A stretch of 63,516 nt of DNA, counting the filler, from Hyphochytrium catenoides (lineage: Eukaryota > Protista > Hyphochytriomycota), in NCBI GenBank assembly GCA_900088475.1. It is 12 parts of 12 records of this genome, joined end to end, with 100 filler letters (N's around TTAATTAATTAA, not from the genome) between each part and the next. Parts side by side here need not be neighbours in the genome. Positions count along the whole stretch, not along the records: positions 24,666 to 27,924 come from FLMG01002538.1; 11 more parts are not named here. The stretch is one strand, 5' to 3'. The position numbers and the translations under genes were made by a program. Positions within the stretch are counted from its first letter, which is position 1; each line of letters starts with the position of its first letter. The notes beneath the pieces were generated by a model. That model did not search any database. It was not told the DNA's origin and saw nothing but the letters and a program-made list of their open reading frames with translations. Positions 25,008-27,662 of this stretch are shown here, piece after piece.

Positions 25008-26042
25008 ATGGCGAAGACGAAGGAGCTTCCCTGGAGTAACAGGAACCACTATAGCTACCGCAACTACGGCGATGACCTCATTCCAAGCACTAGACAACAG
25101 ACGCTGCTTAAGGAATCAGCTTCTCGAATTCTCAAGCTCTGTCGTGACCTCTACTCTGAAATCCCGTTTATCCATTATGGAGGTTCCTTTGGTAAGAATA
25201 CTTACGTTCGTGGCCGGCTTGAACTTGATCTGGTGCCAGATATAGAGGGCATCAATGACGAGGAGTCCCTGAGCAAAACCTTGGACGCACTTGAACCCCA
25301 CCTGCGCTCTTCAAAGGGGGTTGTTGAGGGAACTCTTCACCGAACGCGATGGTCTTTGCAGTTTGACTGGCAGCCTGAATCGCTCGACCCAGCCGTCCAG
25401 ATAGACCTCCTGCCGGCTACGGTGCTCAAATCCAACCCTTTCACCAAGGATACGAGTTTCAAAGTTGGTGTCAGTGCTTCCATGGTGACTCTCCAATATG
25501 AGTTTGTTTACGGTATCCTCCGTGCCAAGGATCCAGTGACACGCTTTTCCAATGGTCAGAAGTATCTCCCTATCTTCAGGAGCACCGTTCGTACCCTCAA
25601 GATGTGGAGAGACGAGCTATTCCTGCGTGACTGCTGTCTACCTGAAATGAAACCATTGTCGTACCTCATTGAGCTCACGGTTCTATGGGCCGTGTACAAG
25701 TGGGCTGACAACGATATTCTTGACTGCTTCAGACGAGTCCTCGAACTCTTTGTGAACTATCGCACGATGCATATCGCTTGGACCACTGATGAGTGTCCCC
25801 AAGCACTCTACTCTCAGGAAAGGGCATGGTCTATACTCGAGACAAGGCCACCAGTTGTCCTGGATCCTGTGAATCCTGACAACAACGTAGCTGCGGCCTT
25901 CCGTGAGTGGGAGATTCTCTCCTTGTATGCAAGAGAGACACTTGACTATGGCACCTCCTCTGCAGCCTCCAGGCTTTTACCGTCTCGCGAACTCCTTCAG
26001 TTTTGCATTGCCAAGAGCACGATGCTACTTAGTAGAAAGTAG
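25008..26042 (+). CDS. 2'-5' oligoadenylate synthetase-like (OAS / cGAS-DncV superfamily) nucleotidyltransferase, intronless, 344 aa
   Basis: GGSFGKNT...ELDLV (GS loop plus two acidic residues), third acid in IDLLPA, RTLKMW, SYLIELTVLWA, and the OAS C-terminal signature RPPVVLDPVNPDNNVA. First ATG at 25008. Confidence 0.9.
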   Translation: MAKTKELPWSNRNHYSYRNYGDDLIPSTRQQTLLKESASRILKLCRDLYSEIPFIHYGGSFGKNTYVRGRLELDLVPDIEGINDEESLSKTLDALEPHLRSSKGVVEGTLHRTRWSLQFDWQPESLDPAVQIDLLPATVLKSNPFTKDTSFKVGVSASMVTLQYEFVYGILRAKDPVTRFSNGQKYLPIFRSTVRTLKMWRDELFLRDCCLPEMKPLSYLIELTVLWAVYKWADNDILDCFRRVLELFVNYRTMHIAWTTDECPQALYSQERAWSILETRPPVVLDPVNPDNNVAAAFREWEILSLYARETLDYGTSSAASRLLPSRELLQFCIAKSTMLLSRK

Positions 26043-26873
26043 CAGTTTCATTCCGTTCTTATCACTAATAGACACACAAACTTCAAGCTATGTCGAGGAA
26101 TATCACCTTTCGTCATAGGTCCTCGAATAACAATGGCAAGCCACAGAAGCCAAAATTTGTCAAGGGAGCTTATACGGGCGCCTCTATAGCAGCCAGCTCC
26201 TTAATATCTCCACCTCCATACTTCGCGGAAGTCCATTTGTCGTTTAAACCAAGCCTTGCCTTACCCCTAGGCAACTATGTTTAGTCAAACACAAGCTAGA
26301 ACGGAGCCTCCACCTTGTCTGAAGAAATATAAGGTGATCTGCTGGTGGCTATGAGCTGCCATTAGCTTGAGGAGGTGAGCTTCAGATAGAGAAGAAGTCT
26401 GAGATGGGAGTTTTTGCTTTTCTGTCCCAACATTTATATAAGTGAAACTCCCCTTTCAGTAACCCATAACTGCATTACTATGCCGTCGTCCCAGATGGTG
26501 AGTAATAAAGGCTTAGGCCTTTAATCACTTTCATATTATTACATAGTCTACTGAGCTTATATAGCCCTCTGGCAGAATAAGTTTTATCCTTCTCTCACCC
26601 TCCGCCGCATCGTGGCACCTCACTTGCAGAAGTTATTATTGAATCTCTCTTGTAGAAATGATAACGGATCAAGAGAGATGCCACAGGCACATCACGAGGG
26701 TGAGAGACCAAGAGCACTGGTCTCGCTAGAGCTTGCTGCACTCTAAGGTGCTTCAAAAAGAAACTTCCAGCCGTAGGACCACAGCGCTTCTTGCCTCGGT
26801 TTACAGGTCAATCGTCGTTTACTCTACAAACAAAGACGCTTCCAGTTAATATCTGTCTTTACAGAGGTAAACA

Positions 26874-27662
26874 ATGCCTACAAAGGACACGCCAGCTCGA
26901 ACAACGCCGCCGGGAAAGGACTCCGCCCGTGCTAGGACGCCAGCGAAGGGAAAACCATCGGAGGGAACGAAGAAGAAGGCAGGAGCAATGCCGATAACAG
27001 AACCTAGTAGCGTTGCTTTAACAGTGAAGACAACAGTGAGGGGCCCTCCACCAAGGAGCGGTGCTATAATAGCGAGTGCTGCGCCGGAAACGGGATCAGC
27101 CATTGGTGGTATGATACCCTTTACGCGAGAAGAGCTCATAAACATGAGAGATCGAGCGTATCTAGATTATCGTATATTGCAGCTGAAACTAGACCACGAC
27201 GAGTTGAAATTGGACGGCGACGAGTACAATATTGACTTCTCTAAGGTGATAGATTTTAAATTTCTGGAAAAAAACACGAAGGGATGCAACGTGGTTGGTA
27301 GCGGAACGGACAAAAGAGACAATTGGATTCAGCTTTGGGAAGACACACTCACAATCAGAGCATGTCGCCGGCTGCTTGATGCGAACTGCAGCGTACAGGG
27401 CTGCAAGGATATCTACAAGCACGGTGCTCATGTTTACGTAGAGGATGACAAAGATTATCAGTACATACTGCCGTTATGTCCCTCTCACAACTCGCAAGAG
27501 TATGAAATTACAGGGGATCGCAAGGATGATTGGACAGACGGAAAAACCTACAATATCAAGAAAGGAACCTTTTGCGTTATGATACAGGGTCATAAAGATA
27601 CGTATGAGCATATCCAAAACTCTCGTAAGGGAAAAATTAAAGGCTCTAAGACAAAATCTTAG
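26874..27662 (+). CDS. Intronless 262-aa protein with a disordered K/T/P-rich N-terminus and a C-terminal HNH-like (beta-beta-alpha-metal, Zn-binding) domain
   Basis: NWIQLWE...CSVQGC...GAHVY...YILPLCPSHN has the C..C / H / LCxxHN spacing of HNH treble-clef nucleases. The ORF is clear; the domain call is by motif recognition only. Confidence 0.65.
   Translation: MPTKDTPARTTPPGKDSARARTPAKGKPSEGTKKKAGAMPITEPSSVALTVKTTVRGPPPRSGAIIASAAPETGSAIGGMIPFTREELINMRDRAYLDYRILQLKLDHDELKLDGDEYNIDFSKVIDFKFLEKNTKGCNVVGSGTDKRDNWIQLWEDTLTIRACRRLLDANCSVQGCKDIYKHGAHVYVEDDKDYQYILPLCPSHNSQEYEITGDRKDDWTDGKTYNIKKGTFCVMIQGHKDTYEHIQNSRKGKIKGSKTKS

Follow-up and report, generated by a model that had tools for sequence, protein, structure and literature searches.

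The window analysed here is a stretch of 63,516 nucleotides joined from 12 parts of the genome of Hyphochytrium catenoides (assembly GCA_900088475.1), and the locus in question occupies one of these parts, the ~3.3-kb record FLMG01002538.1 at positions 24666–27924 (47% GC). An original prediction, made from the sequence alone, held that this piece carries an OAS-type nucleotidyltransferase next to an HNH-like nuclease, and that the two genes might form an immune module like the cyclic oligonucleotide-based antiphage signalling systems (CBASS) of bacteria. The first open reading frame (ORF1) is listed as 24879–26042 on the plus strand, and its first ATG, at 25008, yields a protein of 344 amino acids (25008–26042). 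The second (ORF2) lies at 26874–27662 on the same strand and encodes 262 amino acids. Both frames are uninterrupted and co-oriented, and 831 bp separate the stop of ORF1 at 26042 from the ATG of ORF2 at 26874. This intergenic spacer (26043–26873; 44% GC) holds no credible ORF, RNA family or tRNA, and Rfam and tRNA scans of the whole piece gave no match. There is no third credible ORF on either strand of the piece, where the longest remaining frame, of 99 amino acids, runs antisense over the low-complexity region of ORF2. Neither ORF1 nor ORF2 is a chance reading frame, because both have real homologues; an exact look-up of the two proteins in public assemblies returned no record.

A word-indexed search of 5.8 billion proteins returned a single relative of ORF1, the 526-residue metagenomic protein P0001 (36% identity, 96% coverage). 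The alignment between the two spans ORF1 residues 7–337 with short gaps only, so that 25008 is the likely start of ORF1 and introns are not apparent. The ORF listing and this alignment together confirmed that two intronless, co-oriented ORFs are the only convincing genes on the piece, as had been predicted. Related-locus scans of IMG/VR and the JGI metagenomes, with ORF1 or with ORF1 and P0001 together, found no relatives.

Domain and motif comparisons confirmed ORF1 as a genuine OAS-superfamily nucleotidyltransferase whose predicted catalytic residues are intact. The Pfam domain OAS1_C (PF10421) matched residues 191–316 (25578–25955, plus strand) with E=2.7e-10 and 40.6 bits, above the gathering cut-off of 19.9, and this segment includes LKMW, with the conserved Lys at K198, and DPVNPDNN. 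The best relatives of ORF1 in the PDB were human OAS2 (E=2.4e-12), OAS1 (1.1e-6) and OASL (3.9e-6). The OAS1 alignment covers residues 57–314 and places G59-S60, E72-x-D74, D133, K198 and DPVNPDNN on the catalytic and donor-site motifs of OAS1. Within the nucleotidyltransferase catalytic core (25179–25229, plus strand), G58-G59-S60 (GGSFGK) and E72-L-D74 stand opposite GGSSGK and D75-A-D77 of human OAS1 (4ig8), and the third catalytic acid, D133 (25404–25406, plus strand), lies in QIDLLPA, opposite EFDVLPA (D148). The G-S motif, E72-x-D74 and D133 are invariant between ORF1 and P0001. ORF1 thus shares with the OAS superfamily an OAS1_C match above cut-off and the series GS, [D/E]xD, D, conserved Lys and DP.NP..N, and the statement that it has all OAS motifs held when it was aligned to OAS1 and OAS2. 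It differs from the animal enzymes in being only ~20–25% similar to them and in its first catalytic acid, which is Glu, giving ExD as in cGAS rather than the DxD of human OAS1. Moreover, its nearest relative is viral-looking, not cellular, and organisms like its host have no known partner of the RNase L type.

Matches of ORF1 to bacterial cyclases were weak: the PADLOC cyclase match was 3e-7, and the NCBIfam CBASS cyclase match, at 1.1e-8, fell below the model cut-off. These values agree with the published nesting of the eukaryotic OAS superfamily in clade C of the bacterial cGAS/DncV-like nucleotidyltransferases (CD-NTases) (PMC10732462). OAS is the commonest CD-NTase type across eukaryotes, found in 8 of 12 supergroups (PMC10732462). 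Because OAS-like proteins are so widespread, this protist gene is a further member of an already known kind. By homology, ORF1 would most likely polymerise ATP or other nucleoside triphosphates into a 2'-5'-linked or related oligonucleotide signal once activated, probably by nucleic acid. Its role would be that assigned to OAS-like proteins widespread in non-animal eukaryotes.

ORF2 consists of a basic low-complexity N-terminus, a 49-residue linker and a C-terminal zinc domain. In the N-terminal tail (residues 1–84; 26874–27125, plus strand) the amino acids P/G/S/T/A/K/R account for 79% of residues, and the isoelectric point is 10.7. The linker, residues 85–133, is an acidic stretch of 49 amino acids. 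The C-terminal part (residues 134–262) contains a conserved, predicted zinc-binding domain of ~110 residues (residues 134–244; 27273–27605, plus strand), and its family has no match in the profile libraries searched. The core motif of this domain, C172-x4-C177-x8-H186-x15-C202-x2-H205-N206 (27387–27491, plus strand), is predicted to form a CCCH zinc site, with H186 and N206 as candidate catalytic residues. The three motifs named for ORF2 at the outset were found in place: CSVQGC at residues 172–177, GAHV at 184–187 and PLCPSHN at 200–206.

Single-sequence searches of Pfam, PADLOC, PHROGs, NCBIfam and the PDB with ORF2 gave nothing meaningful, and a word-indexed search with the full-length protein found no relatives. 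An exhaustive phmmer search with residues 80–262 against 1.84 billion representatives returned 28 proteins below E=1e-3, the best of them at 5e-10, and in every case the matched region was residues ~130–215. A profile search returned 28 proteins, down to 3e-44, several of which were already among the phmmer matches. In total, we collected 63 proteins with 79 copies of the domain. Most are stand-alone proteins of ~100–130 amino acids, none has a Pfam or NCBIfam assignment, and the named sources are Trebouxia (a green alga), Dendronephthya (a soft coral) and Stenamoeba (an amoeba transcriptome). A tblastn search of phage records with the domain gave no match. Clusters of the ESM Atlas share the fold of the domain with template-modelling (TM) scores of 0.63–0.69, and in the nearest of them, with 534 members, the commonest phylum listed is Nucleocytoviricota; a search limited to named clusters gave no usable match. 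This family has no entry in Pfam, NCBIfam, PADLOC or PHROGs, and as a by-product it is of more interest than the gene pair.

The consensus of the family is v.NV.GS..D...W..fW..TG....C.I.GC...A..GGHV.V....YI.P.C..HN. In two alignments of the domains that retain His and Asn (A2 and the larger A4), C, H, P, C and N are invariant. Across all 79 domains, the signature in six key columns is CCHCHN in 51 and CCHCCN in 11, the remainder being degenerate. At the fourth ligand position His and Cys alternate, as would be expected of a zinc ligand. Where His or Asn has been lost, this is mostly in the additional copies that tandem proteins of two or three domains carry, a pattern that looks like active domains accompanied by degenerate catalytic ones. 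Such tandem proteins (P0002, P0003, P0011, P0012, P0024 and P0038–P0043) come from large eukaryote-like contigs and carry two or three copies, in some of which the zinc ligands are kept but the conserved His, the Asn or both are gone. A single 798-kb contig holds several paralogues. Two members have additional segments: in the Stenamoeba transcript P0023 the domain is fused to a segment with weak likeness to thioredoxin and to a Cys-rich motif at the C-terminus, and P0010 has a poly-Asn start and an N-terminal Cys-rich motif besides the domain.

The core of the family looks like a divergent, zinc-stabilised HNH nuclease. In profile searches of the PDB with either alignment, the top match was the HNH endonuclease Gmet_0936 (4h9d), which remained sub-threshold both with A2 (E=0.59) and with A4 (E=0.2 over 60 columns). 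This alignment places the first Cys, the third Cys, the fourth ligand and the Asn of the family on C41, C73, C76 and N77 of Gmet_0936, and the His one residue off H54. The zinc site of Gmet_0936 is formed by C38, C41, C73 and C76 and its active site by D53, H54, N68 and N77, and the position of N77 immediately after a zinc ligand was stressed by the authors of the structure (PMC3765158). N206 of ORF2 directly follows the predicted ligand H205 in the same way as N77 follows C76, an agreement at the level of motifs only. More generally, the family has in common with HNN-type HNH enzymes (Gmet_0936, Hpy99I, T4 endonuclease VII) a Cys pair, a His, a beta-hairpin and C-x2-[C/H]-N in collinear order, with 20 residues from His to Asn against 23 in Gmet_0936. 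It departs from them in a first knuckle of C-x4-C instead of C-x2-C, in having neither an Asp before the His nor a conserved middle Asn, and in an extra N-terminal beta/alpha module (NV.GS..D..W..fW) that is absent from known HNH families.

Structure prediction and further comparisons gave a less definite picture. The AlphaFold2 (AF2) model of the domain built with alignment A2 has a mean pLDDT of 82.7 and a pTM of 0.76; the single-sequence model of ORF2 residues 80–262 was unusable (pLDDT 41.6). The former shows a beta-hairpin (domain residues 55–61 and 64–73), after which come C-P-S-H-N and a short helix; three further strands and two helices pack with these elements. Fold searches with this model found no clear HNH match and no significant nuclease match, and the HNH models of Pfam, NCBIfam and PADLOC did not match ORF2 or its family. 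Pairwise hhalign probabilities against T4 endonuclease VII and HK97 gp74 were at most ~1%, both being narrow profiles of near-identical phage sequences (Neff 1.1–2.2). HK97 gp74 has a PLC-x2-H-H arrangement, which we take to be the end of its HNH motif, and thereby shows the PLC-x2-H-[H/N] ending seen in ORF2. A deaminase-like interpretation of H..E/PC..C was dropped, as these motifs lie in beta-strands of the model and not at helix N-termini.

The designation of ORF2 as HNH-like thus survives in part. The Cys/His motif is conserved family-wide and collinear with that of Gmet_0936, whereas the profile match did not reach significance and no fold match was clear, and because of the latter two results we consider the designation plausible and go no further. 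Zinc-stabilised HNN-type nuclease is nevertheless the best single reading of the domain, to which we give somewhat better than even odds. Nuclease activity would be the most likely function because the conserved His and Asn stand beside the zinc ligands as in HNN-type HNH (beta-beta-alpha-Me) endonucleases. The domain would then most likely act by itself as a small enzyme that cuts or nicks DNA, and it may be selfish or mobile.

ORF2 could instead be a non-enzymatic zinc-finger protein related to the WRKY19 type, binding nucleic acid or chromatin with its basic tail as a DNA-binding arm. Fingers of this type, C-x4-C...C-x2-H, are abundant in giant viruses and stramenopiles. The family shares with them (PF24906) a first knuckle of the form C-x-[IV]-x-G-C-x3-A-x2-G and a C-x2-H second half. 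Hhalign gave a probability of 44% against the WRKY19-type repeats encoded near P0001, confined to the first knuckle (C.v.GC...A..G), and three family members showed a weak Pfam Zf_WRKY19 match (E ~0.013). The high isoelectric point of the ORF2 tail, the position of one virus-like member beside genes for histone doublets and a Fapy DNA glycosylase, and the lack of a significant nuclease fold match also fit such a binder. However, the similarity to WRKY19 spans just 15 columns of a domain of ~100 residues, whereas the WRKY19 finger is a 25-residue repeat. To the finger the family adds ~50 N-terminal residues and a beta-hairpin insert of ~14 residues, and it keeps His and Asn in most domains; simple fingers have none of these. 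The Asn right after a zinc ligand is, moreover, an arrangement of HNN nucleases (PMC3765158), and the loss of His and Asn in some tandem copies resembles pairs of active and inactive domains. We therefore regard a purely binding role as possible, at roughly one chance in four, and prefer the nuclease.

The original prediction went further and joined the two genes into a linked synthase-plus-nuclease module, in which the signal made by ORF1 would directly activate the neighbouring ORF2. As in the CBASS nuclease operons (Cap5 HNH-SAVED, Cap4, NucC) and in the OAS–RNase L pathway, a synthase of the CD-NTase family, here with its predicted catalytic residues intact, adjoins a co-oriented gene with nuclease-like motifs. 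Effectors such as NucC bind their signal without a separate sensor domain. The effector of non-animal OAS proteins is, in addition, unknown (PMC10732462). Here the setting is eukaryotic, and the two genes lie either side of an 831-bp spacer rather than in an operon.

Co-occurrence was examined at 10 further, distinct loci that carry members of the ORF2 family (L002, L005, L007, L134, L135, L137, L139, L140, L141 and L142). These loci, each with as much as 10 kb of flanking sequence per side where the contig allows, were searched by tblastn using ORF1 and P0001 as queries, and the family hidden Markov model was run against the six-frame ORFs of L001, the 21.6-kb neighbourhood of P0001. None of the 10 loci has an OAS gene near the family member, and the 10 kb on each side of P0001, the single locus of an OAS relative, contain no member of the family. 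The repeated adjacency of OAS and HNH genes that had been proposed as a check was therefore not found. Family hits in the examined loci were the query genes themselves and, in L142, one more paralogue at a distance of 5 kb; an LTR (long terminal repeat) retroelement lies at the edge of this locus. A tblastn match of ORF1 in L142 (E=0.086, 24% identity over 66 residues) was dismissed as noise. Across bacterial, virus-like and eukaryotic contigs, the stand-alone members of 100–130 residues occur with no OAS nearby in the examined loci; in contrast to CBASS and OAS–RNase L, the adjacency seen here is not conserved.

The architecture of ORF2 points in the same direction. No SAVED, CARF, STING or ankyrin domain was detected in it with Pfam or PADLOC, which bears out a caveat already attached to the prediction, and a putative effector without a sensor domain sets this pair apart from CBASS and RNase L. 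Outside the zinc domain, ORF2 has 84 low-complexity basic residues and 49 ordered ones, leaving no room for a ligand-sensor domain. P0001 bears a different, unrelated C-terminal extension, and no publication pairing OAS-like proteins with HNH effectors in eukaryotes was found in the literature searched. Because homologues do not co-occur with OAS in the sampled loci, a linked module is not supported, and we consider direct activation of ORF2 by its neighbour highly improbable. A genuine two-gene signalling pair in which the HNH-like domain itself would bind the OAS product without any sensor and cleave nucleic acid is similarly improbable.

The relatives of both genes raise the question of a viral origin. 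P0001 is encoded on an 83-kb JGI metagenome contig, at L001:10001–11581. The fetched part (40% GC) encodes two SNF2/DEAD helicases, a PNK3P-AAA_33 kinase-phosphatase, an Rpb3/11-like RNA polymerase subunit, a Ser/Thr kinase, arrays of WRKY19-type zinc fingers and many ORFans, a gene content that looks like that of a giant virus. The zinc-finger protein at L001:17606–18250 has 214 amino acids and eight tandem fingers (CSVDGC...GLCxxHG), whose first knuckle resembles that of the ORF2 family. The C-terminal extension of P0001 comprises ~190 residues that are missing from ORF1; it has no recognisable domain, just a sub-threshold CS-domain match.

Members of the ORF2 family occur in diverse contexts. 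On one virus-like contig, which also carries genes for RNase III, XPG and a 2OG-Fe(II) oxygenase, the family member lies between a Fapy DNA glycosylase and histone genes in the form of fused doublets (L005:988–5116). Another contig (L007) combines a family member with a Peptidase_S74 protein. On L135, the bacterial member (P0027; 108 amino acids, 44% GC) has cox1 on one side and a xanthine dehydrogenase operon on the other, and it stands ~0.7 kb upstream of the gene for a putative DNA methyltransferase; this 449-residue protein contains an SPPY motif and matches N6_N4_Mtase and UPF0020 weakly. The two genes form an island of 44–55% GC in a genome of 60–65% GC and were seen in two assemblies (L135:1024–3424 and L136:157–2557). 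They look like a horizontally acquired pair resembling restriction-modification, an arrangement that gives a hint from context in favour of the HNH reading. A related-locus scan of GTDB genomes with P0027 found no relatives.

To place the H. catenoides genes in their assembly setting, we compared the piece with public contigs of the same organism from two runs (X1 and X2), which may be its own source data. In both runs, one unitig, 24683–27829, covers both genes (depth 21 in X1 and 172 in X2). The left end of the piece (24666–24710) is a short high-copy sequence with a small inverted repeat (GGACTAAG...CTTAGTCC) and a branching assembly graph. Its word depth was 1187 (X1) and 20932 (X2), ~55–120x that of the two-gene unitig, with many short branching contigs. 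The right end (27800–27924) is at ~8–10x the unitig depth; a separate contig begins at 27800, with depths of 165 (X1) and 1710 (X2). Just before this right-hand repeat, a 16-mer (AATGTGCTTTTGGTCC) stands twice in perfect tandem (27768–27799). The assembly piece is only 3.3 kb long because the two-gene unitig is embedded between higher-copy repeats.

The 3.1-kb unit might accordingly be read as a fragment of an integrated giant virus or of a virus-associated element, whose genes would serve the virus and not host immunity, for instance as an OAS-like enzyme and a homing-type nuclease of viral origin. The sole close OAS relative lies on a giant-virus-like contig, the best-matching ESM Atlas cluster has Nucleocytoviricota as its commonest phylum, and a family member is found in a histone-encoding virus-like contig. 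The two genes are also without introns, and higher-copy repeats flank the unit. On the other hand, giant-virus genomes are expected to have a very high coding density, and that of the piece is ~56%, far below such values. The piece has no viral hallmark gene, the IMG/VR scans with ORF1 returned no relatives, and family members are also present in ordinary algal and animal genomes. We regard a viral fragment as a minority possibility, a little less than one chance in three. In a broader form, with the nearest kin of both genes apparently in the giant-virus gene pool and the unit bounded by higher-copy repeats, ORF1 and ORF2 may belong to a stretch of the host genome that derives from a virus or a transposon; this is plausible to a similar, limited degree because repeats flank the unit and both genes have viral affinities.

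Overall, the locus is an ordinary eukaryotic OAS-like family member beside an unrelated orphan-family gene. We estimate a probability of about 0.6 for the joint interpretation that the two genes are real and functionally independent, that ORF2 is likely a nuclease, and that their adjacency is incidental, as it most likely is. Several points weigh against this interpretation. The co-occurrence sample is small (10 family loci and one OAS relative, no flank exceeding 10 kb), and eukaryotic partners need not be linked in any case. The giant-virus origin of L001 is based on gene content, no hallmark capsid or polymerase gene being seen in the fetched part of the contig. Finally, the conserved His lies mid-strand in the predicted structure, not at a strand end.

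OAS-like enzymes are the commonest eukaryotic CD-NTases (PMC10732462), and since their downstream signalling beyond animals is unknown, a linked effector would have been valuable. If real, the two-gene pair would supply non-animal OAS proteins with their first candidate effector. The evidence speaks against a link between ORF1 and ORF2, and the locus therefore does not open the question of non-animal OAS effectors. The family of the ORF2 domain, for its part, has members in algae, an amoeba and a coral as well as on giant-virus-like contigs and one bacterial contig. If its members are indeed HNH nucleases, they would constitute a new branch of the His-Me finger nucleases, and an orphan gene that recurs in giant viruses would be explained.

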